NCBI RefSeq assembly: GCF_032191835.1
Contig: NC_083225.1
Location: forward strand, 39,432,001-39,496,000
From: Heteronotia binoei
Lineage: Eukaryota
DNA: 64,000 nucleotides
Direction: 5' to 3'
Made by a program: the position numbers and the translations under genes. Positions 4,880-56,640 of this stretch are shown here, one piece after another. The notes under the pieces were generated by a model. It was not told the DNA's origin and made no database searches. It was given only the letters and a program-made list of their open reading frames with translations. Each line of letters opens with the position of its first letter. The stretch's first letter is position 1.

Positions 4880-5760
4880 CAGGGCTTTTTTTTTTTTTTA
4901 GCAGGAACACACAGGAATGCAGTTCCAGCTGGCTTGGCATCAGGGGGTGTGGCCTAATATGCAAATGAATTCTTGCTGGGCTTTTTCTACAAAAAAGCCC
5001 TGTGTGAAACAATGGTGACATCAGGCCCGTGGCCAGAAGTTTGATGGGGGGACAGCGGGTAAATTTTTAGGTGGGGGGGCTGTAAAACTCTGCTGCAGTG
5101 GCTGCCGCCCCTTCTGCTCTGCCCCCCCACCTCCCCCGCCCGGTGGCGCCTCCTCCTCCTCCCTTCTTCACACTTTTAAGGCCCAGGGAAGGGGTGGCGA
5201 AGCACTGCTATGGGCTCTTTAAAAGATTACCCTGCCCCGTTGATCAGCTGATTGGTGGGAAAACCCACACAGAAAGCTGGGCACTCAGCTCCTATGCCCC
5301 TTTGGTGCACTCACGATCAGCCTTGGGGGTGAGTGCTGATGCCCCCAGTGCTGATCGTGAGCACACCAGAGGGGCATAGGAGCTGAGCACCCAGCCTTCT
5401 GCGTGGGTTTTCCCACCAATCAGCTGATCAATGGGGGGGGTCATCTTTTAAAGAGCCCGGAGCAGCCGCCCCTTCTCTGGGCCTTAAAAATGTGAAAGAG
5501 GGAGGAGGAGGCGCCGCAGGGAGGGGAGGGGTGGAGCCGCAGGAGGGGAGGGGGTGGCAGCCACTGCAGCAGTGTTTTACCCACCAATCAACCAATCGAC
5601 AGGGGTCTGCCTGGGGTCTCGGTCCAGTAGAGGGGCCACAGGGCTTTAAGGGGGGTTGGATGGGGTGGCCATGTCCCCCCCCCGTGGCTATGGGCCTGCA
5701 TAGGGTGTGGCCTAATATGCAAAGGAGTTCCCGCTGGGCTTTTTTTTAAAAAAAGCCCTG
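4880..5760. mobile_element. Long hAT-type MITE, CAGGGCTTTTT family, with internal hairpin
   Basis: TIRs CAGGGCTTTTTT / AAAAAAGCCCTG; degenerate TSD CCCTTAGC / TCCCTAGC; internal inverted repeat ~5215-5460. Confidence 0.75.
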
Positions 5761-10869: not shown

Positions 10870-11216
10870 CAGGACCTTTTTTTGTAGAAAAAGCCTAGCA
10901 GGAACTCGTTTGCATATTAGGCCACACCCCTGACACCAAGCCAGCCAGAACTGCAGTCATGTGCATTCCCGCTCTGAAAAAGCCTTGGGCTTAGACAGGT
11001 ATAAGTCTTCTTAGCATAGCACTGAAAAAGCACGTAGTTTTGGCCAGGGGTGGAATTCTAGCAGGAGCTTCTTTGCATATTAGACCACACCCCTCTGATG
11101 AAGCTAATCCTCCAAGAGTTTACCAAAAAAGAGCCTTGTAAACTCCTGGAATATTGGCTACATCAGGGGTGTGTGGCCTAAAATGCAAAGGAACTCCAGC
11201 TAGAATTCCACCTCTG
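10870..11216. mobile_element. Two adjacent hAT-type MITEs (CAGGGCTTTTT and CAGGGGTGGAATTC types)
   Basis: Both carry the TTTGCATATTAG(G/A)CCACACCCC core. Confidence 0.7.
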
Positions 11217-11742
11217 GTTTTGGTTGTACGATGTCCAAGTCTTTCCTTACATAGCATTATAAACTTTTGTACTGCACACAATCTAGGGATTTCATGTTAA
11301 ATAAGGATGGCCTTTAGGTTATATCCAGGAATGTGGGGAAATGTGCAAGAAGTTAGGACAAGTCACATATTACTCAGCCTTGGCAGATATGAAGCAGCCA
11401 TCAGTAAACAAATTAATGACTGTATACTGCCCTCCCCCTCAGTATTTAAGATGTTACATCTGCCTTTGAAAACAAGAGGATGTTGTTTTAATGATATTCT
11501 AGTTTTCAAATTGAAATGTTTTCGAACTGTGAGATTGTGCCTTCATTCTGTCTAAATTTCCATGATTTGTGACATTTTGAGAAACAATGGTTCAGGATGT
11601 TCAAACATCTTACATTCCAGAACACAATCAATTGATCCATGTACTCTGAGGGGGGGGGGGGGAGCAATTTCCATAAATAAATCTGGGCTTCCATGCTGAG
11701 CTGCAAGTTGTCATTGGAGCAACCAAGTACAGCAGATATCAA

Positions 11743-15784: not shown

Positions 15785-18060
15785 AATAAAACAATAAAAA
15801 TAAGCAAGATAAAAATAAAATTTAATTATTTAAAAATTTTATTTAAAAATAAAAAGAATTTGTTTATTTAAAATTTATTTTAAACAGGCAAGACATGTTA
15901 TCAGAGGCCAGTCCTAACAACAGTTGGGTTTCCACCTTCTAAACCACTTGGCTGCCTTGAAGGGTGGACACTATGGCATCGTACTATGTTGAGGCCCCTC
16001 CCCTCCCCGGACTCTGCCCATTCCCAGATCCACCCCCAAAGTCTCCAGGTATTTCCCAACACAGACCTGGCAACCCTACCCTTTTCATACCTAAAGGTGC
16101 ATCCAGCAAGTTTAATAGGGCCGTATTGAACAACATGATACGGACAGAGATCTACCTCCAGATGTACATTTCCATCCATATTGGCAACGCACCAAGAAAA
16201 TGACTTATCTGCACATATTTCTCCGGAAGATCAGAGCAAATGTTTACTCTCTGCTGATGGAGATGCATTGGTCTATGAATTTAATTTCAGGCCTTCGTAT
16301 ATAGAACCACAGAGGCATTCTAATTTCATATACATTCCTGCTTAAATCTGGCAGAGGAAGGCTTGAAGGCAATGAAGGGGAACAGAAACTGGCTGAATTT
16401 TTAACCCTAAATTCCACTTCCTTGGGAAAAGATAAGATTCCTTCATGCGCAAGACGTTCACAAGGAGTGGTTTGATAAATTACACAACCTTTCGCCCCCA
16501 GAGATGTATTTGGTACAGACAATAAAATGTAAAGATGGCTTTTTATAGTGAGGTATTTCAATAAAAGTTTCAAAAGGTCAAAAATGTACAGTCAGTGCTT
16601 CACAAGCTTTTAGGCCCAGCTGAAATGCTGTATGGTGGCTGCGGTTAACCTGATGGAAAGATGCCCATCCAGGACACACAGTGCTAGCTTTTCAGCCAAA
16701 CCACTCAAACTGATAGCTTGGAGAGGCATGGGGAAAAGGGCACCAATGCCAGTCATCAGCAGCAAAAAAGGTGGCTGGCATCCCCTCCTGGGTCCATGCT
16801 GCAGCCAACACTGCAGTGCCTTCACTTCCCAGCTGAGAGAGGTATGAGCCCAGGAGGACAAGGTTGTCTCTTGCTCGGGTCAAGAAAATACCTTGAACTC
16901 GTCCTAGGGTTGCCAATCCCAGTTGGGGGCAGAGGATCCCCCAGTCTGGATGCCCTCCCCCCCCCTTCAGGGTTATCAGAAAGCCGGGGGTGGGGAAATG
17001 TCTGCTTGGCACTCCATCATATCCTATGGAGATTGATTCTCATATGGTATAATGGAGAAATGATCTGTGGGTATCTGAAGCTCTAGAGAGGCTATTTTTT
17101 GAGGTAGATGCACCAAATTTTCAGCATAGCATGTGGTGCCTCTCCTCAAAATACTTTCCAGGTTTCAAAAAGATTGGACCAGGGGGTCCAATTCTATGAA
17201 CCCCAAAAGAACAGCCTTCAAAGGGTCTCCCACTTCCCTAGTACAGGCATTTGCTCTCTGCTGCTGACTCACCCATCCTCCCTGGGGGCAACATGTGACT
17301 AGCTGGTTATTACAGGGCTGAGCAGGAGTTGTTGGGTTTCTTATGATTGGCTTTTCAAGGGGCCATCTTTCATGTTGCTTCATGTTGCCTCAGGAGGGAA
17401 CGGATCTAGTCTTGTGACTGGTTAGGCCCCAACTAAGAATGGCAAGAGGAAGGTGGGCTGTTCATGATACGCAGGGCTAATTGGCAAGCATCCTGAGGCG
17501 TCATGCACTGACAGAGGGCTATTTCTGTAACAGCCCATCATTTGTTCTACAGTGGGGTGGGGGTGGGAGGGAACACCCTCGGTGCCAAGCAGCCTCAATC
17601 AAACACTGAGACCAATTTCACACTCAGCTTACCCCACTGCCATGTTCCTCTTCTCCGCGCAGCATCCTTCGGATTTCCCACTATCTGCTCCAGAGCTGCA
17701 GCAAACATCACAGTTTTCGTGGGGCAAACAGAAACTGGTTTTTAGTGGTTTCCATTCGCCTGCAGCTCCAGAGCAGATAGTGGAAAATCCAAAGGACACT
17801 GCGCGGAGAAGAGTAACGTGACAGCGGGGTAAGCTGTGTGTGAAATCGGTCTGTGTTATCCATGCAGCACACTGGAAGAAGGAGATGAAGCCTGGCCCCT
17901 CTTAGCACAGCTCATGTGCAAGAGAGGATAAACAAAGCCAGCAATTAACAGCTGCTACCTCCGGAGCCAGAATGGAGTAGCCCAAATGACAGTAGCCAAT
18001 GGCTACTTAGCACACCCCATTTTAAAAATAGGTTAAGAGCCTATAACCTAGATAGATAAT

Positions 18061-18352: not shown

Positions 18353-18450
18353 TAGATAATTTACATAAACTAGTTAACCCAAGTATAGATGTTCCAAGTC
18401 TTTCTTTGGGGATGACACTGGGGATAATTCACAAACAACATGGGCATGAT

Positions 18451-18642
18451 CAGTGTTCCCTCTAAGCTGAGTTAGTAGGAGCTAGCTCAGTTTTTTAGCC
18501 TCCAGCTCACATGTTTTTGTCTTAGCTCAGGAAAAATGGGCCCAGATCAAGCTAATTTATGCAGTAGCTCGCAACTTTAATGCTAGTAGCTCACAAAGTA
18601 GAATTTCTGCTCACAAGACTCCACAGCTTAGAGGGAACATTG
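18451..18642. mobile_element. hAT-type MITE, CAGTGTTCCCTCTAAGCTG family
   Basis: TIRs and perfect TSD GGCATGAT. Confidence 0.9.
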
Positions 18643-18749
18643 GGCATGATATAGCCAATGTCAAACACTTTTGAGAGCCGTTTATTTCAGCAGTGGAGTT
18701 AAATACATCCTTAAACTGATATCTTGTGCACATGTTCTTAATTACTTAA

Positions 18750-19719
18750 TTTAAAACAATGCTATGCTGCCTTTCCAACCAAATAGAGTCTGCACAGTGG
18801 CAAACATCATAATATATTAAATAAACAATTCAGTAAAACCAAATAAACACACAAAAACACACAACACAATAAGGAGAGAGGGCCAATAATAGTTACTAGC
18901 AGTACACCAGACAAACAAAAAAAATCTTCAACCACTGGCAGAAGACAACAGTGGAAGGAGAAAGGCATATCTCCCTAGGGAGGTAGTTCTAAAATTTTGG
19001 TGTCACAGCTGTAGAAAGCCCTTTCTTGCGCTGCCACCCATCTGGACTCAGATGGCAGGGTAGCCAAAGCAGGGCCTCTGAGATGACCTAAGTGAGCAGG
19101 CAGGTTCATAATGTATATTAATGTGTATTGTGGTCCTTAATGTATATTGGTCTCTGGCTGCACAGGACTTTAAAGGTGAACATAAACTCCTTGAATTGAG
19201 CCTGGAAGCAAACTAGAAACCAATCTGGACTGATGTGGTCCCTAAAACCCACTCCAGTCAACACTCTGGGCATAGCATTCTGTATCAGTTGTAGTTTCCC
19301 AACAGTCTTCAAGAATAGCCCCAAGTAGGGCACACTGCAGTAATCTAACCTAGATCTTACCAGGGCATGTATCACAGTGTTGCAGTCTTTCCTACCCAGG
19401 AAGGGCTGCAGCTGGCTCACTAGGAAAAGCTGATAAAAGGTACCCCTGGCACCACTGCCACCTGCTTATCCAACAGGAGTGCTGGTTCCAACACCCCCAA
19501 GCTACAAAAATGTTTGGGGGGAGAGTGCAACCCCATCCATAACAGGGGATATCCCAGTTCCTGGACTAAACCTTCCTCTACCAGAAGCATCTCTGTTTTA
19601 TGGAGATTTCAGTTGATTAGCCTTCATCCATTCCAAAACTTCCTCCAAGCACCCATTCATGGTTGCCGCAACCTCCCTGGAATCTTCTCCAAGAGTGAGA
19701 TAAAACTGAGTGATCTACT
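18750..19719 (-). mobile_element. L2-type LINE 3' fragment (RT C-terminus), right part of a split element
   Basis: Translates to TVIHALVRSRLDYCS and KLQLIQNAMPRVLTG, typical of L2-clade ORF2. Confidence 0.8.
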
Positions 19720-19959
19720 TAGGGTGGCCAGACCGTCCCGGTCTCCCGGGACTTTCCCGGTTCTGGCCCCCAATTCCCGGCTCCCGGGCTGGGTATACCG
19801 GGACCATTAAGAGGTCCCGGTTTAGCCAGCCAGAGAGCCGGGGGCCGCGCGCCCGGGCGGGGAAGGCGGCGAGTGAGGGAGGGAGCGACCCTGCGCACGC
19901 GCAGGGACGCTCCCTCACTCACTCGCCGCCTTCCCCGCCCGCGCACGGGGCCGGGCGGT

Positions 19960-21010
19960 GGCGGCGGAGGCCCGGGAGGGCGTCGGAAAGGCCCGCGGGG
20001 GTCGCTGGAGGCCCTCCAGCGACCCCCGCGGGCCTTTCCGAGGCTTCCCGGGGCTGGAAACCCCCACCCCCCGTCCTCCTCCCCCCGGGAGGGCGTCGGA
20101 AAGGCTCGCGGGGGTCGCTGGAGGCCCTCCAGCGACCCCCGCGGGCCTTTCCGACGCTTCCCAGGGCTGGAAACCCCCACCCCCCGTCCTCCTCCCCCCG
20201 GGAGGACGTCGGAAAGGCCCGCGGGGGTCGCTGGAGGCCCTCCAGCGACCCCCGCGGGCCTTTCCAAGGCTTCCCGGGGCTGGAAACCCCCACCCCCCCG
20301 TCCTCCTCCCCCCGGGAGGCCGTCGGAAAGGCCCGCGGGGGTCGCTGGAGGCCCTCCAGCGACCCCCGCGGGCCTTTCCGAGGCTTCCCGGGGCTGGAAA
20401 CCCCCACCCCCCCCGTCCTCCTCCGCCGGGGAGGGCGTCGGAAAGGCCCGCGGGGGTCGCTGGAGGCCCTCCAGCGACCCCCGCGGGCCTTTCCGAGGCT
20501 TCCCGGGGCTGGAAACCCCCACCCCCCGTCCTCCTCCCTCCGGGAGGACGTCGGAAAGGCCCGCGGGGGTCGCTGGAGGCCCTCCAGCGACCCCCGTGGG
20601 CCTTTCCGAGGCTTCCCGGGGCTGGAAACCCCCACCCCCCCATCCTCCTCCGCCGGGGAGGGCGTCGGAAAGGCCCGCGGGGGTCGCTGGAGGCCCTCCA
20701 GCGACCCCCGCGGGCCTTTCCGAGGCTTCCCGGGGCTGGAAACCCCCACCCCCCGTCCTCCTCCGCCCGGGAGGGCGTCGGAAAGGCCCGCGGGGGTCGC
20801 TGGAGGCCCTCCAGCGACCCCCGCGGGCCTTTCCGACGCTTCCCGGGGCTGGAAACCCCCACCCCCCGTCCTCCTCCGCCCGGGAGGGCGTCGGAAAGGC
20901 CTGCGGTGGTCGCTGGAGGCCCTCCAGCGACCCCCGCGGGCCTTTCCGACGCTTCCCCGGCCTCTACCACCCCCCCCCGTGCTGGCGGAGGCCCGGGAGG
21001 GCATCGGAAA
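19960..21010. repeat. GC-rich tandem array, 9 units of 113-115 bp, each with a ~59-bp palindrome
   Basis: GTCGCTGGAGGCCCTCCAGCGAC begins at 20001, 20114, 20227, 20341, 20456, 20569, 20683, 20796 and 20909. Confidence 0.95.
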
Positions 21011-21102
21011 GGCCTCTCCGCCGCCGCCGGACTCGCCGCCGCTGCCGCCGCCGCTGGACTCGCCGCCGCCGGTAAGGGGGCCGCCGAAAGCGGGGGGGGC
21101 TG

Positions 21103-21306
21103 NNNNNNNNNNNNNNNNNNNNNNNNNNNNNNNNNNNNNNNNNNNNNNNNNNNNNNNNNNNNNNNNNNNNNNNNNNNNNNNNNNNNNNNNNNNNNNNNNN
21201 NNNNNNNNNNNNNNNNNNNNNNNNNNNNNNNNNNNNNNNNNNNNNNNNNNNNNNNNNNNNNNNNNNNNNNNNNNNNNNNNNNNNNNNNNNNNNNNNNNNN
21301 NNNNNN
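21103..21306. other. Assembly gap
   Basis: Run of N. Confidence 1.
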
Positions 21307-21772
21307 GAGTGTTGGACTGGATGGGCCACTGGCCTGATCCAACAGGGCTTCTCTTATGTTCTTATGTGACGCAGAGTGTTGGACTGGATGGGCCACTGGC
21401 CTGATCCAACAGGGCTTCTGTTATGTTCTTATGTGACGCAGAGTGTTGGACTGGATGGGCCACTGGCCTGATCCAACAGGGCTTCTGTTATGTTCTTATG
21501 TGACACAGAGTGTTGGACTGGATGGGCCACTGGCCTGATCCAACAGGGCTTCTCTTATGTTCTTATGTGACGCAGAGTGTTGGACTGGATGGGCCACTGG
21601 CCTGATCCAACAGGGCTTCTCTTATGTTCTTATGTGATGCAGAGTGTTGGACTGGATGGGCCACTGGCCTGATCCAACAGGGCTTCTGTTATGTTCTTAT
21701 GTGACGCAGAGTGTTGGACTGGATGGGCCATTGGCCTGATCCAACATGGCTTCTCTTATGTTCTTATGTGAC
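21307..21772 (+). repeat. Tandem array of at least 7 x 67 bp CR1-type 3' tail
   Basis: GAGTGTTGGACTGGATGGGCCA...TTATGTTCTTATG starts at 21307, 21374, 21441, 21508, 21575, 21642 and 21709. Confidence 0.92.
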
Positions 21773-21840
21773 AATACTGACTTTGGTGGACCCAAGCACT
21801 GATTCAGTGTAAGGGAGCTTTGTGTTTGTGTCTTCTGGTG

Positions 21841-22748
21841 CAATTTTGTTCTCAGATCCTGTATTTACTTCATCAGTATATGGGATAAGGCACTTTCTCA
21901 ACTGTGCTGCATAATGCAGCCTATTTATTTTGTCCTGTTTGCTCTGTTGGCTCTATCTGCGCCACCTTCATCACTTTCGGGGTGCGGATCCCCCAGTGGG
22001 GTGGTCTCCCGACTCCCTCCGCCGGCTGTTTCTGATAGCCCTGCGCCCCCTCTTTCATTTGATATGTGTCCCGTGCGGGTGCCACCCTCCCGCCGGGAGA
22101 TGCAGCAAAATGAGCCCCCTTGAGGCTTATGGCGGCAGGGCTCGGGGGAAGCGAGCTAGACTGCTGTTCTTTTGAGGGGTTATAGAGTGTTTCGAGCCCG
22201 TCCCTGTGGCATCGGTCCCATCGTTGTAGGGCCCAGGGGGCCGGCGCAGCGGCCTGCTGAAGCAGCCTGTCGGTCACTTCCGGGTTCCTGTCCTGCATCT
22301 CGACCTGTGTTATTAGTGACAGGCTGCTTCGGCGGGCCGCTGCGCCGGCCCCCTGGGTCCCACAACGATGAGACCGATGCCACAGGGACGGGCTCGAAAC
22401 ACTCTATAACCCCTCAAAAGAACAGCAGTCTAGCTCGCTTCCCCCGAGCCCTGCCGCCATAAGCCTCAAGGGGGCTCATTTTGCGGCATCTCCCGGCGGG
22501 AGGGTGGCACCCGCACGGGACACATATCAAATGAAAGAGGGGGCGCAGGGCTATCAGAAACAGCCGGCGGAGGGAGTCGGGAGACCACCCCACTGGGGGA
22601 TCCACACCCCGAAAGTGATGAAGGTGGCGCAGATAGAGCCAACAGAGCAAACAGGACAAAATAAATAGGCTGCATTATGCAGCACAGTTGAGAAAGTGCC
22701 TTATCCCATATACTGATGAAGTATATACAGGATTTGAGAACAAAATTG
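21841..22748. repeat. Near-perfect inverted repeat, 431-bp arms, 46-bp spacer
   Basis: 21841-22271 is the reverse complement of 22318-22748; the ORF track shows mirror peptides on the two strands. Confidence 0.95.
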
Positions 22749-22779
22749 TTTCCGGCGGTGATATTTGGGGGATTTTTGG

Positions 22780-23010
22780 GGACGTCACAGGAAGTGCTGT
22801 GAAGTCACTTCCTGTTTCCGGCAGTGGCATTTGGGGGAAATGATGTCATTTGGGGGAAGTGATGTCAGAGGAAGTGATGTCACTTCCCGTTTCCGGCAGG
22901 TGACACGGGGAAATGATGTCACAGGAAGTGGTGTCACTTCCTGCTTCCGGCGGTGGCATGACATCACCGGAAGTGACGTCACCGGAAGTGACGTCACTTC
23001 CTGTTTCCGG
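22780..23010. promoter_or_regulatory. Cluster of GGAAGTGA(C/T)GTCAC (ETS-CRE-like) motifs in the element's subterminal region
   Basis: Two perfect CCGGAAGTGACGTCA copies at 22967-22996 plus several degenerate copies; function not shown. Confidence 0.4.
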
Positions 23011-23097
23011 CGGCGCGCGCGCTTCGCGCGCGCACACCCCTACCTTCCCCCCCCCCCAGGTGTCCCTGGCTGGCCTTCAGACATTATGGTCACCCTA

Positions 23098-23540
23098 GAT
23101 CTACTTTCAAGGTAGGACTGAAACCACTGCAGAACAGCACCTTGCAGTCCCAACCCTGAAAGGCAGGCCAGAAGGATACCATGACTGATGGTATTAAAAG
23201 CCACCAAGTTGTCCAGGAGAATTAACAGGGTCATACTCCCACTGTCCATCTCTTGGTACAGATCATGCACTAAAGTGGCCAAGGCTGCTTCAGTTCCATA
23301 ACCAGGCATGAAAATAAGGTTACACTCCCACTGTCCATCTCTTGATGCAGGTCATCCACCAGGGCAGCCATGGCTATTTCAGTCCAACAACCAGGCTCAT
23401 AACTGGGCCTGAAAGCAGAGTAGCAGATCCAAACAATCCATTTCAATTAGGAATCCTTGAAGATGGCCAGCCACCATTCATTCAGTCACCTTGCTCAAGA
23501 ATGGAACATTTCACAAACAGATACCGACACTCCCTCTTCT
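23098..23540 (-). mobile_element. L2-type LINE RT fragment, left part of the split element
   Basis: Translates to PGYGTEAAL...LLILLDNLVAFNTISHGILL...LQWFQSYLE. Confidence 0.85.
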
Positions 23541-23605: not shown

Positions 23606-24178
23606 TTGGGTTGCCAAGTCCTAGGCCTCCGGCCAGGAAGAGTTTCATGCATGCCAGTGTGATGTCATCACCCAGATGTGACATCTTTGCACCAGGCATG
23701 TCACACATGGGACGCTCTAGCATTTAGGTAAAGAACTCTGTGGTGCCATAGAGTTTTTACCTGAACGCTAGAGCATCCAGTGTGTGATGTGCTTGATGCA
23801 ATGACATCACTTCTAGGTAATGTTATCACACTGAGCATGTCAAGCAGCAATGGAGTTTTGGGGGGTGGGGATCAGTGTTCCCTCTAAGCTGCAGAGTCTT
23901 GTGAGCAAAAGTTCTACTTTGTGAGCTACTGTTATTAAAGTTGTGAGCTACAGGCATTAAAGTTGTGAGGTACTGCATAAATCATTGTGCTCCGGGGTCA
24001 TCCTTCCTGAGCTAAGACAAAAATGTGTGAGTTGGAGGCTAAAAAACTGTGAGCTAGCTCACACTAACTCAGAGGGAAAACTGGTGGGGATCCACCCCGC
24101 TGGCCAGCTCCATGCCCATGAGTTGGGGGCCCCCAAACTGCAGGAAAACTCACCCCCAGTGGGAGACTAGAAATCCTA
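23606..24178. mobile_element. hAT-type MITE containing a nested CAGTGTT MITE (23873-24083)
   Basis: Outer TSD TTTGATAG; inner TSD GTGGGGAT. Confidence 0.85.
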
Positions 24179-24460: not shown

Positions 24461-26187
24461 ATGGAACATTAAAGACTGGATGGTAGCTATTCAGCTGTCC
24501 CAGATCCAGGGTACATTTCTTTAGAAACGGGTATAGTACTGCTGCGGTTGCCAGGTCTGTGTTGGAAAATATCTGGAGACTGGGGGTGAATCTGGGAGAG
24601 AGGCAGGGTTTGGGGAGGGGAGAGGGCTCAGCATGGTACAATGCCATCGAGTCCACCCTTCAAAGCAGCCATTTTCTCCAGAGGAACTGACCTCTGCCAG
24701 TTGGGAATCAGTTGTAAAAGCAGGAGATTTCCAGGTCCCACCTGGAGGCTGGTAACCCTTTCCACTGCCCACTTCAAGGCAGAGGTGACCACTCCCTCTG
24801 TCAGGGGGGCATTTAATGTCTTCCCGACCAGATCCAGCGCTTTTCTGGCAGATTTAAACACCCAGAGACAGGCGGCAAGACTCATACAAGCAGTCAGTAA
24901 GTCTTAAACTTCCAAGAATCCTGCCCTTATCCTTAGATTGGACAAGTTGAAAGGTATCCCACACAACTGGACAAATTGGACTGCATTTTAAAATGTCTTG
25001 CATGTTTCAGTTTGTGGTAAGCCAGCAGAGCATACTGTTCCTCCACTCAGCCGTAAACACCAGCATGATATCCTTGATACCAAAGTACAGAATCAGTCTT
25101 CCAGCCTAGTAAGAGCCAGGTAGCTCACGATACCACTAGATTCCAATGAGAATCAATTCACGCCCAGTTTGTCTACATGTCCGGTCTCACACTCATTGTT
25201 GATCTACCTCCTGACAATACTAATCAGCCTTCCTCCACAGCTTCTGAATTGTTACTCCACAATTCCCATTTGAGAACAAACAGGAGCTCACACAAAAGGG
25301 ATACTCCAGCCTTAGAAAAGCAGAGGTGTCCAGTATCACATCACCCTGACAGATCTCAAGCCAACTCCTCCCACCCAATTAGCCCTATTGAAATCCACAG
25401 GACGCTCCGTTCGTGATTTTGTCATGATTTTTTGCTTAGAAGAATGCAAATTGTACTCGGAAAGTAAACTGAAACATTTTGATTTATTCAGCTAGCTTTG
25501 GCAGCCGAAATGTGGGAATCATGTTTCAGGCAGATGTTCAGCGACGGCTTCCAACTGCTCATAGGATGAGGTCAGGCTCTTATAAAATGCACAGATATTT
25601 GTTCCAGCCTTGTGTGCAGGGTACGTATTAGCATATGAAGTCCTCCTAGGGGCTGATGCATCAATATCATCATTTACATCTTGGCCTCTGACCCGCGTGA
25701 CCTTTACATGCTTCTGCTTTGGTTCAATGAGAACAGCAGAGGTCTTGAAGAAGCAGTAATATGATGAGCAGGTAAGAATGCTGTTGAGGTACCTTGGCTA
25801 TCAAGATGCAATGCTAGTCTGAAAGTCAGTTGCTTGTTTGGCTTGAATTCATGGTATTTGGCTTGCTTGGAAATAAATGCCAGGGCTTATTCAAGATGGA
25901 GTTTTTTTTCTCAAAGCGGGTTGGTCCATCTAAGTTTCTTTCAGACACACTAAGCAACACACACACAAAACCCACCACAACTCATGAAGTCATAGTGAGG
26001 AAGCCACAAGATTGATTGAATTAAGACAACATCAAGTTTGCTACTACCTCTACAGAAAAATGGTATTAAGAATTCTATTACATTACACCTGACCACTCTG
26101 TATCCTCCTAGATGTCCCCTTGGAAACATTTAGAGAGGATGGGGGGAAGTCCACATTTCTCCAAGGTAACTGATCATTTGTTCTTAC

Positions 26188-26385
26188 CAGGGCTTTTTTT
26201 GTAGAAAAAGCCCTGCGGGAACTCATTTGCATATTAGGTTCCACCCCCTGACATCACCATTGTTCCACACAGGACTTTTTGTAGAAAAAGCCCAGCAGGA
26301 ACTTATTTGCATATTAGGCCACACACCTTGCCACTAAGTCAGCTGGAACTGCGCTCCTGTGCGTTCCAGCTCAAAAAACGCCCTG
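26188..26385. mobile_element. hAT-type MITE, CAGGGCTTTTT family (dimeric)
   Basis: Perfect TSD GTTCTTAC. Confidence 0.9.
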
Positions 26386-29300
26386 GTTCTTACATGTGTT
26401 TCTCAACTACTGGAAAAGGAAGCCAGAAAATTATTATATTGTGACTTTGGCTTTTTAAAAAAAAAAACAAATAAATTTATTTTAAAATTCCAAGTTGTAC
26501 ATAGCCTTGTAAAATGAATTAGTACCAAATAAAATTGATTCAACACATAACAAAATGCTACTGCACATATAGAAGGTACAATACAGTATATACAGCCTTG
26601 TAGATCATTTTATATAGAATTTACAGTAAATAAAATCCAGTCTGCCAATAAATAAATAAATATCCTATTAAGGGTAAATTAAATGACAATTGGGCCAAAA
26701 GTATTGACTTTTGTTGTTTGTATGTTAAAGGAAAAAGAACTTCCAGAGAACTGGCAAAGTGCACTGAAAATGCATTATCAATGTGTGTGAAAGCAGTGGT
26801 CGAAGGGAACGCAAGGGAAAGCTGGTTGGATCGAAACCAGTGTTGACAAGCTCCTTTTGCACTTACAGCAAAATGGGATATGGTTTCAGCTTCTGACCCA
26901 GCCCTCTATTTCCTTGACATGGCAATGGGGCAGAGATCTCTCCTATATCTCTAAAGGCATTAGCTTGGCTGTCTGCCAGTATTGTTTTGTCATAATGGTA
27001 AGGGAGATTTATTTGAGGAAGGCATTCCAAACTCCAAAACTTAGCCAGGCCTAGAGCCTGGGAAGTTGGTCCTGAAGTTAAATATAACCCTAACCCACCC
27101 ATCTCTACTTTGTCAACAAGTTTAAGCCATACAATTCATTGATAAAGTCTGACCTGAAGGTTAGATTGCTAAAAATTAAGACCAATAGTGTATTTCCTTA
27201 ATAAGTAATTTGGAAGTAGTAATTTTTTGAGATGTCAGTAATGAGAAATCCTTTAGAACCAAGGTAAGTTTTAAATTAATTATTTAAATATAAATGTAAA
27301 ATGATAACACACCCCTGAAATACTGCATTCTAGATGGATTGCAACCCAGTTTAAAAGTTTGGCATCCAAACTGTATGAGGATCCTGCCCCCTCCTCCAGC
27401 CAAGACCCCCTTGGTTAGTGGGGTCACCATCTTATTTTGAACTTAGTTGTTTTAAGAGACACCTCCTGTTAGAGCATAAGTGCCAGGGGATCTGGAACTA
27501 AGTTGCATAAAGGGTGCATCCATGAAAACCCTTGAAAGAGGTAGAGGAGTGCTGGCATTACAAACCAATTAAGTGCAATCTCCCCCAGCTCAGGGTTCTC
27601 AATACAACCTCACTTCATTCTCAATACCAAAAGACTTTTCAACACTGAAATATCTGGGCATATCCCAGAGGTGTCTGCCCAGCCCAAGGAAATTGCTATT
27701 TTCTCTTCTCTTTTTTTGTCCAGTTCCTCTTTTTTAAAAACTCAAGAAAGGCACTCAATTTATGCTCCATCCTGTTTCAGGAGCTATCTTGACTCACCCA
27801 AGTTTCTGTGTCAATGCAGATCTGGCTCATTTCAACTTAATTATGGTACGTTAATCATGTTGCCTCACCCAGGCTCTACGCACTCATGCAGATTTGGCTC
27901 ATGACAGGCTAATCTAGGTAATTTTCCCACTTTTTCCTACCAGAGTTTGACGGCAGTTGATATTAAACCAGCCAGTGAGATTCAAACTTCACATCTTGGA
28001 CCAATCAAATTCTTAGGAAAATTAGTTCCCATGTCCAGCTATGGGACTCTTCCCCGCAGGGCTTATTTCATAGAAAAGAAGACGACTGTGGATTTATACC
28101 CCACCCTTCTCTCTGAATCAAAGGTCAATTTAGCACTCACCTTACTCTGAGTCTGTCTTCTCTGCACGGCGTCCTCCTGATTTCCCACTATTTGTGCCTG
28201 GGCTGCAGCAAATATCACGGTTTTCATGCAGCAAATGGAAACTGCTAAAAAAAACAGTTTCCATTTGCTGCACAAAAACCGCAATGTTTGCTGCAGCCCT
28301 GACGCAAATAGTAGGAAATCGGGAGGGCGCCACGCTGAGAAGATGGACATGAGGGCGGAGTAAGGTGAGTGCAAAATCAGCCAGCGTCTCAGCAGTTTAC
28401 AATCTCCTTTTTCTTCTTCTCCCACAACAGAAAAGGCCCAGCAGGATCTCATTTGCATATTAGGTCACACCTTCTGACACCAAGCCAGCTGGAACTGCAT
28501 TCCTGCTCAAAAAGAACCTGCTTCCCCATAAAAAGACCATCCCAAGTCCATGAAATGTGTGGCAAGTATCCAGTATCTGAGCACCTCTGTGATGCAGGCT
28601 CCTCCCCAGTCCTCAGTCCCAGGATTTCAGGTGGTATTTCCCTTCCTAAAAATTTCCAAATTTTCTTCCTTTTCATTTTTATCAAGTGCACCCCACCCAT
28701 GGGGGGGGGGGGTAATCCAGGGAATTCGGTGCTTAATGTAGGTTTTTTACATTTTTCTCCTTTTATTTTGCATACAATAAAGCTTGGTTTGTGTTTACAG
28801 TCACTCTCTCATTCTCTTTCTTCATAATATTGTTGTGGGGTGCCCTTACCAAGATCCACCTTGGTATACACCGACCAAGGTCCTGCGTTATTCCTTTCTG
28901 GAACCCTTTTAAAGCTAATTTCTCCTCCTTTGAGTTCAGTTTGGATAACAACTGGAGCAGATTTTTCTGGTGCATCTGCATGAAATCATAACCTAATCAT
29001 CTACTTTCTGGGATTTTCCTTGCTTTGCTCCGGTCATCTCCAAACCTGGCTTGATACAAGGGGTGGGGAGGGGTGAGCAGTCAAAGTGTATACGGTCAAA
29101 GTGTATATTTGCATACCACTGGGACAGGAAGGTGAGCATTTCTGAAGCTCCTGCCCACATTAGTGTTATTTTCCATGCCTTGGCATCTCAAAGTCATTCC
29201 CCTCTTGCATCCAGATGGCTTTTTCAGACTTTAAAAAGGTAATTGATAGATCATTATAGCACCACAGCAATTTATTGCCAGCTTCTATTAGTCCCTCTAA

Positions 29301-29763: not shown

Positions 29764-29946
29764 CAGGGCTTTTTTGTAGCAGGAACTCATTTGCATATTA
29801 GGCCACACCTCCCTTATGTAGCCAATCCTCCAAGAGCTTACAGGGCTCTTCTTACAGGGCCTACTGTAAGTTCTTGGAGGATTGCCTACATCAGGGAGGT
29901 GTGGCCTAATATGCAAAGGAGTACCTGCTACCAAAACAAAGCCCTG
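29764..29946. mobile_element. hAT-type palindromic MITE, CAGGGCTTTTT family
   Basis: Internal GTAGCCAATCCTCCAAGAG...CTTGGAGGATTGCCTAC inverted repeat; relatives at ~45805-45950, 50538-50721 and 54540-54718. Confidence 0.8.
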
Positions 29947-30861: not shown

Positions 30862-31605
30862 GTAGGGATGCGAGCCTCCAGGTGGGACCTGGGGATCCCC
30901 TGGAATTAGGGTTGCCAAGTCCAACTCAGGCAATATCTGTGGACTTTGAGGATGGAGCCAGGAGCAAGGGTGTGACAAGCACGATTGAACTCCAAAAGGA
31001 GTTTTGGCAATCACATTTAAAGAGACCGTGCTCCTTTTAAATGCCTTTCTTCCATAGGAAATAATGGAGGGATAGCAGCATCTTCTTTGGGGGCTCATAG
31101 AATCGGACCCCCTGGTTCATTCTTTTTGAAACTTGGGAAGTGATTTGAGGAGACACGATGGATGCTATGCTGAAATTTTGGTGCTTTTACCTCAAAAAAA
31201 ACCGCCAGCCTCTCTGGATCCCCAGATATCCACAGATCGATTCTCCATTATACCCTATGGGAATCAGTCTCCATAGGGAATAATGAAGTGGCCAGAAGAT
31301 ATTTCCCTCCCCTCCCCCCGCTTTCTGATGACCCTGAAGCAGGGAAAGGACCTCCAAACCAGGGGATCCCCTGCCCCCAACTGGGGATTGGCAACCCTAC
31401 CTGGAATTACAGCTCATAGAGAGATCTGTTCCCCTAGAGAAGATGGTTGCTTTGGAGGATAGTCTTTATGGCACTGTACCCAGCTGAGATCCCTGTCCTT
31501 CCCAGGATCCATTAAAAAAATATCCAGGAGTTTCCCAACCTGGATCTAGAAAGCCTACCTCCATCCCCCACCAGTGGCCAAGGGAGACCTGAAACCCTAA
31601 ATTCA
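30862..31605. mobile_element. MITE containing a nested ~490-bp hAT-type element (30907-31399)
   Basis: Inner TIRs TAGGGTTGCCAA / TTGGCAACCCTA with perfect TSD CCTGGAAT. Confidence 0.85.
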
Positions 31606-40149: not shown

Positions 40150-40364
40150 NNNNNNNNNNNNNNNNNNNNNNNNNNNNNNNNNNNNNNNNNNNNNNNNNNN
40201 NNNNNNNNNNNNNNNNNNNNNNNNNNNNNNNNNNNNNNNNNNNNNNNNNNNNNNNNNNNNNNNNNNNNNNNNNNNNNNNNNNNNNNNNNNNNNNNNNNNN
40301 NNNNNNNNNNNNNNNNNNNNNNNNNNNNNNNNNNNNNNNNNNNNNNNNNNNNNNNNNNNNNNNN
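40150..40364. other. Assembly gap
   Basis: Run of N. Confidence 1.
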
Positions 40365-44927: not shown

Positions 44928-46739
44928 CTAGCACAGGGAAGGTGGGGAAAGGGCTCCTTCTGCTTGTGCAGTTGTAGTAGACAGCCCCATTGTATTTATG
45001 CTTCTTTTTAAAATATTTATATGCTGGGTACATCAGCATTGCTACCTCAGGGGCTGCTGATAAACCAGAGTTTACCATCAAAGTTGCATAAAATCAGTAA
45101 AAGATAGGAAAATGGTGCAACAATGCAGAACAAATGAAAGAATGAATGTTTAAGCAGTTAAGATATGAAAATTGGTATCTTAAAACATAATTTCAATACT
45201 AACAGCATTTACTAAAAACAACTAAAATAGAAGGACAAGACCTTGTACCAAAAACCTCAATCCCAAACCAGTTATCAACAAAACTGATTAAAAATCCAGG
45301 ACAATCTAAACATCTTTCACCCTGCCTCAGCCAAATTAACAGTCTAGTCATACCAGGTGACTCCTGGTGCAGAGAGAGAGAGAAAGACAGAGAGATTCAT
45401 AATCTGGGCACCAGAACAACAAAAAAAAAAAGGTCATATTTCTGATGCTCACACACCTTCCCTTGGCATCCTGGGCTTTTTCGTATGGCTTTGTTTCAGT
45501 TCAAAGGTTTAAGCCAAAGGCTTGATAGAATAGATTGTTCTAGGGAAGGATCTGAAGGAAGAGAGAGAGCAAAGGAGCTGGTATTCTAAGAAATGGACTA
45601 TAGCTAGATCTGACATACACACACTCTCTCTCTGAAATCAGTAGGGCAGAAAATTGCTTTACTTTGGATCATGTCTAATATTATTTGATAATTGAAAGTA
45701 TGGTCTAAACTCAGTGAAAATTAAAAAAGAGGATTAAAACTGGTAGAGAGTAATTGATTTGATCAAAGGGGCACCAACAACAGTTATATATCTTGATATA
45801 AGCAGGCTTTTTTTGTAGCAGGAATATTGGGCCACACACCCCTGATGTAGCCAATCCTCCAAGAGCTTGCAGTAGGCCCTGTAAGAAGAGCCCTGCAAGC
45901 TCTTGGAGGATTGGCTACATCAGAGGTGTGTGGCCCAATATACCAAAAAAGCCCCGTATCAAATAAGTACCAGTTATAGCGCTCCCTGTTCAAGGGCATC
46001 TGACTGGTATCCTTTCTACTTGCAGGAGGCAGATGGAAGTAATCGCATTCTTGTCTTCAGTGTGATCACTTGTGGTTCAGTTGGAGTATTCCAGAGAGCT
46101 TTTAATTCAGTGTTAAACTGGAGAATTGTTATTTCTATGGGGGTGGGGGTTCGCCTGATTTTGTTTATTCATGGAACTATTAGGCAACGACTTTTTACGT
46201 TTTATTGCTTGCTTCCTTTTTTAATTTTGTATTTTTATTCCAGATGATTCAGCAAGCTTGTTGCTACAGACCAGTATAGTAAATGTAATACATTACACTG
46301 AGTAAACAGTAAATAAAACATGACAGTTGTGTTGCCTGCATTTTTTTCAGCAACGATAGTGCTTTGTGGTCAGTGCTTCTCACAAGCACAGCTGAGTTCA
46401 AATAGTTTCACTGCAGTTTTGCATCTAAATGAGTGCTCTCAGGCAGCTGCATTACAGCAACAGCAGCATCTCAAGAACTCAGGCGTGAACAAACTAAGCT
46501 AAAAGACCAGCAAAGTGTTTGGTTATTTTAGATTGGACTGTAACTTTGGGCTCTGATCTTCTAAATCAATTTCATAGCCACTAAATTTGGAGTTATTCCA
46601 ACGGTTTGCGCTGTTCTCACAACCCATTTCAGTAACTGCACAAATCTAGTGCATTACCACTATTGCTCATTTTGTGCAACTGTCCAATCTGTCCCAGGAG
46701 AAGCAGCTACACTACTGTTATATTCACATATCCTGCATT

Positions 46740-47500: not shown

Positions 47501-48099
47501 AAAGGAGGCGCTGCAATTATAACCTCACTGGTGTCAAAACTGGGATTATAAACAGATGAAGGAACTAGGCAAGGATTAGTGCTATGGAAGAATGCCTGAT
47601 GCCACTGAGTGACTTTGCCTCACTATCTTCCTCTTGCTTTGCCTGCAAAGGGAGGCAAAAGACATAGGTTGCCAGGTCTGTGTTGGAAAATACCTGGAGA
47701 CTTCAGGGGAGGATCCAGGAGAGGGCAGGGATTGGGGAGGGGAGGGGCCTCAGTATGGTGCAATGCCATAGACTCCACCCTTCAAAACAGCCATTTTCTC
47801 CAGGGGAACTGATCTTTGCAAGTTGGAGATCAGTTGTAAAAGCAGGAGCTCTCCAGGCCCAACTTTGAAGACATGCAACCTGCATGTGCAATAGCCACAC
47901 ACTCTTTCCAAACAGCAGCAAAAAACAAGGAAGCCGTATGGGTACTGGAAGCTCTGCAATTTGGTTACAGGTTGCAACCCATTGGTTGAACACCACTGTA
48001 TCAGAACAAATGTATTGGGTGGTGGAGACAGCCTCATTCTTCATATTTCAGTTTCAGGAGATAACTGGGCCACCATTGTACAGCATCATATCTGACTAG

Positions 48100-48284
48100 C
48101 AGAGGTTTTTTTGTAGAAAAAGCCTAGCAGGGACTCCTTTGCATATAAGGCCACACCCTATGGCATCACCATTGTTTCACACAGGTTTTTTTTGTAGAAA
48201 AAGCCCAGCATATTAGGCCACACCCTCTGACACCAAGGCAGCCAAAACTACATTCTGGAGTGTTCCTGCTCAAAAAAAGCCCTG
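48100..48284. mobile_element. hAT-type MITE, CAGGGCTTTTT family
   Basis: Perfect TSD CTGACTAG. Confidence 0.85.
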
Positions 48285-48479
48285 CTGACTAGTGACAGCA
48301 TATCCGGCTGTTAAAACTTGGCCATTTGGCCACACTCAGGCACTGACTTTTAAGTTTCCATTCAATATTCCCTTTTTTAGGATCTCGTATCTGCTGCCTC
48401 AGAGACCACACAAATCCAGCTCCTCGGCAATGTTTTAACTCTCCCAGCACAGAATTTCACAATATAAATATAGTGTATC

Positions 48480-50076
48480 TAGGCTTCCCAACCCTCCCAC
48501 CCTGGCGGGGGACCCCAGGATTTCCAGCCTCTTCCCCGCTCCCCAAAAAAACGGAAGTGGGGGGAGGGGGAAACGGCGCCAAGAAGCGTGGCGAGCCGCC
48601 CCATCTCGGAGCGGGCGACACCGCTGGGCAGCTGCCGCCTCTTCTCCACTTCACCGTAGCTGCTCCTCCGAGATGGGCTCAGGCTGAGCCCATCTCGGAG
48701 GAGCAGCTACGGAGAAGAGGCGGCAGCGCAGTGGCGTCGCCCGCTCCGCTCCGCCTTTGAGGTGAAATCTTGGGGTGAAATTCTCTGAGGTGAAATCTGA
48801 GGTGAATTCTTGGGGGCTCAGGGCTGAATTTGTCAGGCACGGTGTAGGCAGCCCTATGAATGGCAGGAGGGGACCTTTACCCGGGACGGTCGGTCAAGCG
48901 ACTGTTTCCTCTTCCTTCCTGGGGAAGCGTTGGCGCCTCAGAGCCCGGTCGGGCCTTGGCGTTCTCGGAGCACCAATGCATAGTGGACGATGGTAAGACG
49001 TGAGGAGGGAGCTTCTTCTCTCTTCTGAGGATGCCGATTCCCGGGCGGGGCCGATCTCACCTTCCCTCGTCCGCTGCCCAAAGGCAAAATCTCCTGAAAT
49101 CCCGCTGCCTGGGTTTTTTTGGGGGGAGGGGGGCTTGCAGGCGGCTTTTCTGCCTCCCCACCCTCACAAATTCCACCCTGCGTTTTATATACCGCCCTTT
49201 CCCTCTTTAGTCCCTTTGAGGGAGGGCAGCGCATCCTTGATGACTCGGTTCGCACCAAGGGGCAGCGACTGTATGTTCCCTGGGCTAACACCGCTGTGCT
49301 TTTGTGAGAGGAGGCAGAGTCAGGCTCTCAAAGAACAAGTATTCTTATGTTCGAGTATTCGAGGGAGGACGCTGGCTCAGTGGTAGAGCATCTGCTTGGG
49401 AAGCAGAAGGTCCCAGGTTCAATCCCTGGCATCTCCAAAAAAGGGTCCAGGCAAATAGGTGTGAAAAACCTCAGCTTGAGACCCTGGAGAGCCGCTGCCA
49501 GTCTGAGAAGACAATACTGACTTTGATGGACCAAAGGTCTGATTCTGTATAAGGCAGCTTCATATGTTCATATGTTCAAGGGGAGGGTGGAGGCAGGCCA
49601 GGAGCGTGGCAAGCCGCACGTCTGGGTCCTAGAAGGACCCAGATTCGCGGCTCGCCATGCTCCTGGCCTGCCTCCACCCTTCCCTTCTCTGATTTCACCT
49701 CAGAGGCGGAGCGGGTGACGCTGCTGCGCTGCCGCCTCTTCTCCGTAGCTGCTCCTCCGAGATGGGCTCAGCTTGAGCCCATCTCGGAGGAGCAGCTACA
49801 GTGAAGCGGAGAAGAGGCAGCAGCGCAGCGGCGTCGCCCGCTCCACTCCGCCTCTGAGGTGAAATCAGAGAAGGGGAGAGTGGAGGGAAGAAAGGCATTT
49901 AAAAAGGTGTGCCGTCCCTTTAATTGTGATGGACAGAACTCCCTTTGGAGTTCAATTGTGCTTGACACACCCTTGCTCCTAGCTCCACCCCAGTGTCTCC
50001 TGGCTCCACCCCCAAAGTCTCCTGGCTCCACCCCCAAAGTCCCCAGATATTTCTGGAATTGGACTTGGCAACCCTA
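48480..50076. mobile_element. Composite non-autonomous hAT-type element (1.6 kb) with hairpin cassettes and an internal SINE
   Basis: Termini TAGGCTTCCCAA / TTGGCAACCCTA; perfect TSD AGTGTATC. Confidence 0.88.
49364..49578 (+). mobile_element. tRNA-derived SINE, Squam2-like, little diverged
   Basis: GGCTCAGTGGTAGAGCA A box, GGTTCAATCCC B box and (TTCATATG)n tail. Confidence 0.85.
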
Positions 50077-50786
50077 AGTGTATCCACAGAAGAGCTAAAC
50101 TCTTTTGTATTCTGCTTTATTAGATTGCATTTTCTTGGCACACCACACTACTATATTGTGTACTCTCATTTAGTCCAAAAGGAAGGAAGGAAAGAGAGAG
50201 TTTACAATATCATGGCTGTTGGTGGCATGAGTATTTTAATTAGCAAAACAGAAGAAAGCCAAAGAATGTGAAATATGAACTAGGCTATATTCTCAATCTC
50301 CCTATATCCAAATAAAATAGAATCCCATGTTTCAATTGCAGCACAAGCCTCTCACAAAAATAATTTAGGCAGATTTTTCAAGGCTTGCAACTTTTAATTG
50401 GTAAATTAATCAACTAAAGCTTCAGTTCACTAATCAGGAAGTGCAAATTGAAATCAATGGGATTCTGCCTTAAGGGCAGTCTTGTTTTTATTTTTGATGT
50501 ATTATAACAGGAAATGAACCTTAATTTTGTTTATTTGCAGGGCTTTTTTGTAGCAGGAACTCCTTTGCATATTAGACTACACACCCCCCCCAATGCAAAC
50601 AGTCCTCTAAGAATTTACAGTAGGCCCTGTACAAAGAACCCTGTAAGCCCTTGGAGGATTGGCTACATCTGGGGGGTGTAGCCTAATATGCAAAGGAGTT
50701 CCTGCTACAAAAAAAGCCCTGTATTAAAGTATAACTAAACTTCCTGCAACATATCAGTAAAAGTATCTGTACTTTAGTTTGATAAT

Positions 50787-55200: not shown

Positions 55201-55442
55201 AACAATTTCTACAACAGTTTTCTAAAAGTCCTAAGCAAGTCAAAAGTCCTATGTTTTCAACAGGGCATACTTACAATAAATTGTTCATTTATTTTTTTTT
55301 AAATTATATTTTTAGACCGTCCTTCCCAGAGGATACAAAGCACCCTTAAAACTTTGCAACATTAAGTAACTTGGCAAAGATTAGTGGTGTTCTTTGGAAA
55401 CGTTATTTAAAACTGACTAATTTCGGCACTCTTCATCTTTCA

Positions 55443-55961
55443 TAGGCTTCCCAATCCCCAGGTCCCAGCTGGGGATCCCCCGGTTTTACAGGCTTCCCCC
55501 CTCCCCCAGCCAGCTGGCTGGCGGGGGAAGCCCCACCTCCACAGCCATTATGCACCTCCATGAACAATTCCCATAAAGAATGATGGGGAATTGATCCGCG
55601 GGTATCGGGGGCTCTGGGGGGGCTGTTTTTTGAGGTAGAGGTGCCAAATTTTCAGTATAGCATCCAGTGCCTCTTCCCAAAATGCCCCCCAAGTTTCAAA
55701 AGTATTGGACCAGGGGGTCCAATTCTACGAGCCCCAAAAGAAGGTGCCCCTATCCTTCATTATTTTCTATGGAAGGAAGGCATTTTAAAAGGTGTGCTGT
55801 CCCTTTAAATGTGATGGCCAGAACTCCCTTGGAGTTCAATTCTGCTTGTCACACCCGTGCTCCTGGCTCTGCCCCCAATGTCTCCTGGCTCCACCCCCAA
55901 AGTCTCCTGGCCCCACCCCCAAAGTCCCCAGATATTTCTTGAATTGGACTTGGCAACCCTA
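55443..55961. mobile_element. hAT-type element, short member of the TAGGCTTCCCAA family
   Basis: Perfect TSD ATCTTTCA; ends shared with 48480-50076. Confidence 0.88.
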
Positions 55962-56436
55962 ATCTTTCATAATTTTCTGTTTCATGCTGTTTTTTAAAAA
56001 TGGTATCCTGAGAATGAATTGTGATTTTGCAAGGATTTTAAGCTGCTTTGGTTTGCAAAAATAAATTGAATCGAAAAGATTAGTCATATGGCTAAGCCAC
56101 ACAGAAGGGAAAGTATGAATATTCCCAAATTAGGTTGTAGTGTAGTTCCTTTTGAGGGGATTTGTATCCTGCTTTCCCACTTTCTAACAGGATCATGTTG
56201 ATTTTGGGATGTCGTGAAAATAGCAGAGCTGAATAGCCCTTAAATACATAGGGTTACAGTTTACAGTTTTTCTGTTATTTTGCTTATTCACAGAAATGAG
56301 AATCCAGACACATCTCCCAAACTATTGCATCCCCTTTTCTACTCATGTGTCATCCTGGGCGGGGGGGGGGGGCGTTGGGTTGTTTTTAATTGGTGGTTTT
56401 AGTTATTTTTATTGATAATGTAACAATACCTTTGTT

Positions 56437-56552
56437 CAGGGCTTTTTTGTAGAAAAAGCCCAGCAGGAATGCATTTGCAGATTAGGCCACACCCCCAACA
56501 CCAAGCCAGCCAGAACTGTGTTCCTGTGCGTTCCTGCTCAATAAAAGCCCTG
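56437..56552. mobile_element. hAT-type MITE, CAGGGCTTTTT family (monomeric)
   Basis: Perfect TSD CCTTTGTT. Confidence 0.9.
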
Positions 56553-56557
56553 CCTTT

Positions 56558-56640
56558 GTTCAAGTCCAGTGGCAGCTTTATGACCAACAAGTTTAATTCT
56601 GGGTATAAGCTTTTGTGTGCATGCACATTTCTTCAGATAC
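56558..56640 (-). mobile_element. Penelope-like element fragment
   Basis: AAGTCCAGTGGCAGCTTTATGACCAACAAG...GGTATAAGCTTT; a related + strand fragment lies at ~62155-62240. Confidence 0.5.

Follow-up and report, generated by a model that had tools for sequence, protein, structure and literature searches.

A tandem array of GC-rich palindromes within a 3.4-kb, most likely hAT-like insert of a gecko genome

Anatomy of the tandem array

The window analyzed here—a stretch of 64,000 nucleotides from contig NC_083225.1 of the Heteronotia binoei assembly GCF_032191835.1—harbors a direct tandem array (Table 1), with units of 113–115 bp, which TRF resolved into 8.7 copies with a period of 113, 96% matches, and a score of 1798. 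An earlier note, made from the letters of the window, had described nine very GC-rich units of this length, separated by C-runs and each centered on a perfect palindrome with 29-nt arms and a 1-nt spacer. The array and its nine palindromes are confirmed to be present in this assembly: next to the TRF call, the 25-nt palindrome center occurs nine times from 20000 to 20908 (at spacings of 113, 113, 114, 115, 113, 114, 113, and 113; no match in 100 shuffles), and the GC content is 0.77. Compared with a reference 59-mer (19983–20041; 29-nt arms around a single central C), all nine cores possess the 29-nt arms and the 1-nt spacer. Perfection, on the other hand, applies to five of the nine (units 1, 4, 5, 7, and 8), the others carrying one arm mismatch (units 2, 3, and 6) or two (unit 9), all of them one-sided. 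Once mismatches are allowed, an inverted-repeat search extends the arms to 40–42 nt, and each unit then reads as an ~85-nt imperfect palindrome around the GC-rich center GGAGG-C-CCTCC, followed by a C-rich linker of 28–30 nt.

The linkers are the C-runs of the earlier description, and the length of these runs accounts for all indels between the units (TRF, sequence reading). In the unit alignment, the linker has the same orientation in eight of eight units, and each of these eight linkers contains a minus-strand G-quadruplex motif—eight motifs within the ~1-kb array versus 29 on both strands of the other 60.6 kb of the window. Under repeated fold-backs, linker orientation would alternate. Because the eight linkers are co-oriented and unit 9 forms a degenerate edge, the array is a direct tandem rather than the outcome of iterated folding back, and its units are arranged directly, not alternately. 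With a period of 113 and linkers running the same way round, it belongs with the minisatellites, that is, with head-to-tail units of roughly 10–100+ bp.

At its right-hand side, the array fades out. The linker of unit 9 has diverged, and behind it stands part of a tenth left arm (~20985–21014); local alignment of the array unit to 20958–21102 gave a z of 9.1, marking this segment as a degenerate array edge. The N run that follows begins at 21103, 145 bases past the end of the array, and hence lies near the array but does not adjoin it; the earlier note had described the two as abutting.

When folded as single-stranded DNA, each unit reaches about −57 kcal/mol on either strand (z of about −10.8 and −9.1). 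The proposed proneness of the units to form structures is borne out in that they are strongly hairpin-prone, but easy cruciform extrusion is not expected of arms of 29–42 nt and a GC-rich center: short arms of this kind favor single-strand hairpins instead.

The TSD-bounded insert and related elements in the window

The array sits within a 3378-bp insert (19720–23097) that has TAGGGTG... inverted ends and is flanked by a perfect 8-bp target-site duplication (TSD; GATCTACT). Directly inside the two TSD copies, the ends read TAGGGTGGCCAG... on the left and ...TGGTCACCCTA on the right; TAGGGTGGCCAG matches TAGGGTGACCAT at 10 of 12 positions, and the start TAGGG fits the hAT-type YARNG. When the window was scanned blindly for 8-bp direct repeats accompanied by inverted ends (at least 10 of 12 positions), 13 candidates emerged, this insert among them, against ~0.45 per composition-preserving shuffle. 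Clusters of short subterminal repeats, which are typical of hAT elements, occur at either end: the left 141 bp contain eight TCCCGG/CCGGGA hexamers (0.3 expected) and the right 349 bp seven TTCCGG/CCGGAA hexamers (0.2 expected). Many hATs prefer nTnnnnAn target sites, a pattern that GATCTACT does not fit. Elsewhere in the 64-kb window we found no other copy of the insert's element family, the joined insert flanks (representing a paralogous empty site) had no other match in the window by local BLAST with 15819–15858 masked, and the tested open reading frames (ORFs) of at least 110 aa revealed no transposase domain. The insert is most likely a non-autonomous hAT-like composite element, a class call made from a single copy without transposase.

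The insert also differs from its surroundings in composition. The flanks have a CpG o/e of 0.18 and 0.21, every part of the insert one of 0.65–0.93, and the jump falls exactly at the TSD. The earlier observation that CpGs are largely intact thus holds for the array (o/e 0.75), but it is not specific to it: CpG richness belongs to the TSD-bounded insert as a whole, every part of which shares it, and is best explained as reflecting the source and moderate age of the transposon's whole contents.

Besides the array, the insert contains several further repeats (Table 1). To the left of the array lies a separate GC-rich palindrome with a predicted DNA fold of −69.3 kcal/mol (z −13.6). Right after the N run starts a seven-copy array of a SINE tail (97% match); SINE-derived satellites have been reported in geckos, and the 67-bp concatemer is of this kind (PMC10702118). 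It is followed by a hairpin whose 431-nt arms differ at nine positions (2.1%), three of these nine mismatches being CpG transitions; the 125-aa ORF of this hairpin has no Pfam domain. The 54–60-bp palindromic repeats at 22749–23035 carry GGAAGTGA(C/T)GTCACTTCC and TTTCCGGC motifs, which could be ETS/CRE-like or else transposase-binding repeats, and the region terminates in a GCGCGCGCGCTTCGCGCGCGC palindrome.

Table 1 Features of the 3.4-kb insert and of related elements in the window
Feature	Position	Strand	Evidence or remarks
Left TSD copy GATCTACT	19712–19719	.	Junction reading, TSD+TIR scan
Left TIR (TAGGGTGGCCAG...) and subterminal region with 8 TCCCGG/CCGGGA hexamers	19720–19860	+	10/12 match to right end; hexamer count
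GC-rich palindrome separate from the array; arms of 54 nt, 91% complementary, around a 2-nt spacer (2 mismatches in 43-nt arms)	19843–19952	.	Inverted-repeat search, palindrome scan
Tandem array, 8.7 units of 113–115 bp; 59-nt near-perfect core, 1-nt spacer	19971–20957	+	TRF, core pattern, unit table and alignment, G4 scan
Degenerate array edge, then GCC-rich 27-bp × 1.9 repeat ending GGTAAG, up to N run	20958–21102	+	Local alignment; TRF 21018–21069
Run of 204 N, assembly gap or deliberate mask	21103–21306	.	Sequence
SINE 3′-tail concatemer, 67 bp × 7, ending in a further SINE-tail piece	21307–21835	+	TRF; alignment to tRNA-derived SINE 49373–49575
Hairpin, 431-nt arms, 98% complementary, 46-nt spacer	21841–22748	.	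Inverted-repeat search
Right subterminal region with 7 TTCCGG/CCGGAA hexamers in 54–60-bp palindromic repeats, and right TIR (...TGGTCACCCTA)	22749–23097	-	TRF 22853–23013; hexamer count; junction
Right TSD copy GATCTACT	23098–23105	.	Junction reading, TSD+TIR scan
Simple TAGGGTTGCCAA-ended copies	30907–31399 and 55443–55961		TSD scan
Second composite hAT-like element	48480–50076 (48472–50084 with TSD AGTGTATC)		Ends TAGGCTTCCCAA / TAGGGTTGCCAA
Hairpin-shaped MITE-like repeats, 49–93-nt arms, 10–58-nt spacers	5235–5436, 11044–11217, 17609–17852, 28168–28331, 29771–29936, 45824–45941		
8-bp-TSD MITEs, CAGTGTTCCCTC or CAGGGCTTTTTT ends	18443–18650, 23865–24091, 26180–26393, 48092–48292, 56429–56560		

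A sister family with TAGGGTTGCCAA ends is represented in the window by two simple copies of ~500 bp and one composite, each with an 8-bp TSD of its own. The two simple copies (30899–31407 and 55435–55969 when their TSDs, CCTGGAAT and ATCTTTCA, are included) share ~78% identity. The composite retains 191 bp of the family's right end, while most of its interior has been replaced by GC-rich palindromes—two ~160-bp copies of one and another with 53-nt arms—together with a tRNA-derived SINE (49373–49575). One of the palindromes stops exactly at 49886, where the family backbone resumes, and neighboring palindromes have arm ends in common; chained arm ends and a backbone junction at this position are as serial strand switches would give. 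In a scan of the whole window, long palindromes with spacers of at most 3 nt were found only inside the two composites, an (AT)n run excepted. The other long hairpins of the window have spacers of 10–58 nt and are mostly MITE-like, and several of that type possess 8-bp TSDs. A second N run, of 215 bases, lies at 40150–40364.

Decay of the units and searches for relatives

The earlier note had taken the array to be recent or homogenized, and its intact CpGs to suggest youth or escape from methylation. Units 1–8 differ on average at 3.3 of the 96 compared positions (3.4%), similar in order to the divergence between the arms of the 431-nt hairpin, and units 5 and 7 are the sole identical pair over the 96 nt. 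The array is accordingly not brand new, and one identical pair amounts to little sign of ongoing homogenization; as far as the letters tell, there is no evidence that this process is strong. The 13 distinct substitutions comprise five CpG transitions, three other transitions, and five transversions. Per site, CpG transitions are enriched 7.5-fold (p = 0.01), which argues for some germline methylation and against the proposed escape. Five changes fall within the 59-nt cores, each hitting one arm and none being compensatory, and we see no evidence in the units of selection for pairing. The pattern points to a single amplification burst that would have been followed by ordinary decay, including methylation-type loss of CpGs.

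Searches for coding, RNA, or viral relatives gave no source for the array. Although it is stop-free in several frames, its translations (400 aa and 76 aa) had no relatives in a word-indexed protein collection, and a coding array was rejected for want of any protein word match. Pfam detected no domain in twenty ORFs of at least 110 aa outside the array region. At gathering scores, Rfam found nothing in the region; its only hits, two tRNA-like SINE heads, lay in other parts of the window. A permissive scan of the array yielded, on both strands, sub-threshold matches to many miRNA hairpin models from unrelated families, the best of which reached 45.5 bits where the gathering score is 70. The core had no exact match in viral contigs and the arm none in metagenome contigs. 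A parvovirus-ITR-like or other viral hairpin origin was discarded on account of the zero exact viral matches and the lack of a T-shaped structure. A literature search with the TIR strings brought up nothing but unrelated primer sequences.

Nor did the rest of the insert or the window provide a template. Neither subterminal region, nor the 431-nt hairpin, nor the second composite aligned locally to the unit any better than shuffles did; the shared TCCCGG/TTCCGR hexamers constitute a resemblance between unit and element parts at the hexamer level and nothing beyond. Since only the degenerate edge unit aligned, we rejected the idea that the unit derives from another part of the element. In the readable letters of the window, the 204 N aside, neither the core motif outside 20000–20932 nor an inverted partner of the array was found. 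Nested insertions of hairpin MITEs were likewise dismissed as a source of the palindromes, which have no flanking TSDs and are unlike the genuine MITEs of the window. The public runs amounted to one of 17 Mb, holding 5% of the sampled words; no RNA run contained the stretch.

Possible origins of the array

We consider it fairly probable that the array is a non-coding minisatellite and belongs to the filler inside a non-autonomous hAT-like transposon of 3.4 kb that was inserted into CpG-poor gecko DNA. Judging from its geometry—the 1-nt spacer and the chained palindromes—we infer a fold-back mechanism. A GC-rich segment of ~42 nt would have been copied back on itself, whether by priming from a fold-back or by a switch of strands in the course of repair or replication synthesis, to give a palindrome with a 1-nt center. 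The 113-bp block of palindrome plus C-rich linker may then have been amplified head-to-tail through slippage, unequal sister exchange, or repeated strand invasion, and the copies would have decayed independently since. The role of the array as filler, and the order of amplification and insertion, are read from one element copy and stay correspondingly conditional. Such events have precedents: template switching and gap filling yield filler-carrying TIR transposons in animals, multicopy Pack-TIRs favor GC-rich DNA (PMC8277862), and tandem repeats have been described inside transposons (PMC4079207).

On this reading, the array is a further example of a transposon-internal, hairpin-forming minisatellite made by repair-type rearrangement, and probably arose as a by-product of DNA repair rather than as a stand-alone functional element. 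No sequence-specific function is evident, and any effect is likely physical. Because every unit combines a hairpin that is very stable on either strand with a G-quadruplex/i-motif linker, the array is predicted to stall polymerases and should be hard to sequence; its length probably varies. Taken alone, it would be ordinary transposon-borne repeat DNA that is likely to cause trouble in sequencing and replication and might serve as a marker of variable length.

A rather different source of the GC-rich DNA would be Pack-type capture, by which the left half of the insert, and the array with it, came from the CpG-island promoter or first exon of a host gene, with the minisatellite pre-existing in, or derived from, the donor locus. 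This is possible, though on balance we think it unlikely. The insert is CpG-island-like, its GCC-rich tract at 21015–21078 ends in GGTAAG and so resembles the end of a first exon, and the preference of multicopy Pack-TIRs for GC-rich DNA (PMC8277862) would suit such a donor. However, no parent gene was recognized, with no protein matches and no Pfam domain in the tested ORFs, and capture alone leaves unexplained why near-spacerless palindromes recur in both composites. The palindromes might alternatively be excision footprints—long P-nucleotide-like tracts from hAT flank hairpins that were opened far from the tip or replicated—in which case their centers would be former hAT junctions. Formation of hairpins on flanking DNA by hAT transposases is established (PMC5499845), and the 1–3-nt spacers, the confinement of the palindromes to the hAT composites of the window, and a 6–7-nt direct repeat of center-proximal sequence past the right arm (GCTGGA... 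in the array unit; GCGCAC at 19843–19952) are all consistent with this idea. The short direct repeats are imperfect, though, and could be due to chance or to template-switch microhomology, and no residual 8-bp TSD is evident. Usual footprints, moreover, are far shorter than arms of 29–54 nt or 431 nt, and we regard this explanation as very improbable.

Two further proposals concern the reality of the array and its possible use. The repeats or their copy number could have been distorted by assembly or by gap closing beside the N run, leaving an artifact or a mis-sized array. GC-rich hairpins sequence poorly, the N run lies close by with another tandem array beginning directly past it, and the sole public run is small and shares few words with the stretch. 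Still, private and shared substitutions, C-runs of differing lengths, and a degenerate edge unit form the pattern of a real array, whereas looping in the assembly graph would yield identical units; the palindromes are also short and internal, unlike artifacts of chimeric reads. This makes a distorted array quite unlikely. As for use, the nine hairpins might form a transcribed cluster of miRNA-like or siRNA precursors, given that each unit can give a long hairpin from both strands and weakly matches many miRNA precursor models. These Rfam matches, however, lie far below gathering scores, involve unrelated families, and fall on both strands, which amounts to a generic hairpin signal; the core changes are uncompensated (0/5), and no RNA run with the stretch exists among the public runs. 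Perfect stems of 77% GC with 1–3-nt loops are also unlike Drosha or Dicer substrates, and a functional hairpin-RNA locus is hardly credible.

The array would gain in importance if it reflected a general habit of these elements. In the window the pattern is seen twice: GC-rich, near-spacerless palindromes occur only in composite hATs, where they are chained and sometimes amplified. More speculatively, and with considerable doubt, one could propose that non-autonomous hATs in this gecko genome systematically build their interiors from such palindromes via hairpin-based capture. The hairpins that hAT transposase makes on the flanks, or fold-backs primed at excision gaps, would then become heritable palindromic filler, and the palindromes may chain and sometimes amplify into minisatellites. 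Hairpin-based capture of this kind differs from the Pack type, in which gene fragments are captured linearly. Were it true, a mechanism-specific process would be at work throughout the genome, and the array would be one of its visible products; were the pattern general, it would provide a natural record of how hairpin and fold-back intermediates of cut-and-paste transposition turn into new DNA, and would scatter CpG-rich, structure-prone arrays into CpG-poor regions.

Among known systems, the insert resembles Pack-TIR and composite hAT elements, for which gap-filling and FoSTeST models exist (PMC8277862), in that TIRs and a TSD enclose an unrelated GC-rich interior, and template switching best accounts for the rearrangements and tandem duplications inside it. 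It differs from them in an interior made up mainly of near-spacerless palindromes and tandem arrays instead of a recognizable gene fragment. Tetris and foldback elements of Drosophila virilis (PMC4079207) are similarly non-autonomous DNA transposons with an internal array of ~100–200-bp units, and their repeats seed satellites. The repeats of Tetris, however, lie within long TIRs, whereas the present array is one-sided and its unit is itself palindromic; in the readable letters it has no inverted partner, so that the foldback arrangement, with the array inverted at both element ends, does not apply. The human PATRRs, which are unstable long palindromes (PMC1851657), share near-spacerless inverted repeats that are in principle capable of forming cruciforms or hairpins, but they are AT-rich and hundreds of base pairs long; arms of more than 100 bp around an AT-rich center are not a feature of the array, with its arms of 29–42 nt and its GC-rich center. 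The human minisatellite MSY1 (PMC2599865) likewise has a self-complementary unit, predicted to fold into a hairpin, for which hairpin-driven slippage or SDSA has been proposed as the mechanism of mutation. MSY1 is AT-rich, with 25-bp units and documented hypervariability, whereas the array described here combines 77% GC and 113-bp units with a G4-type linker.
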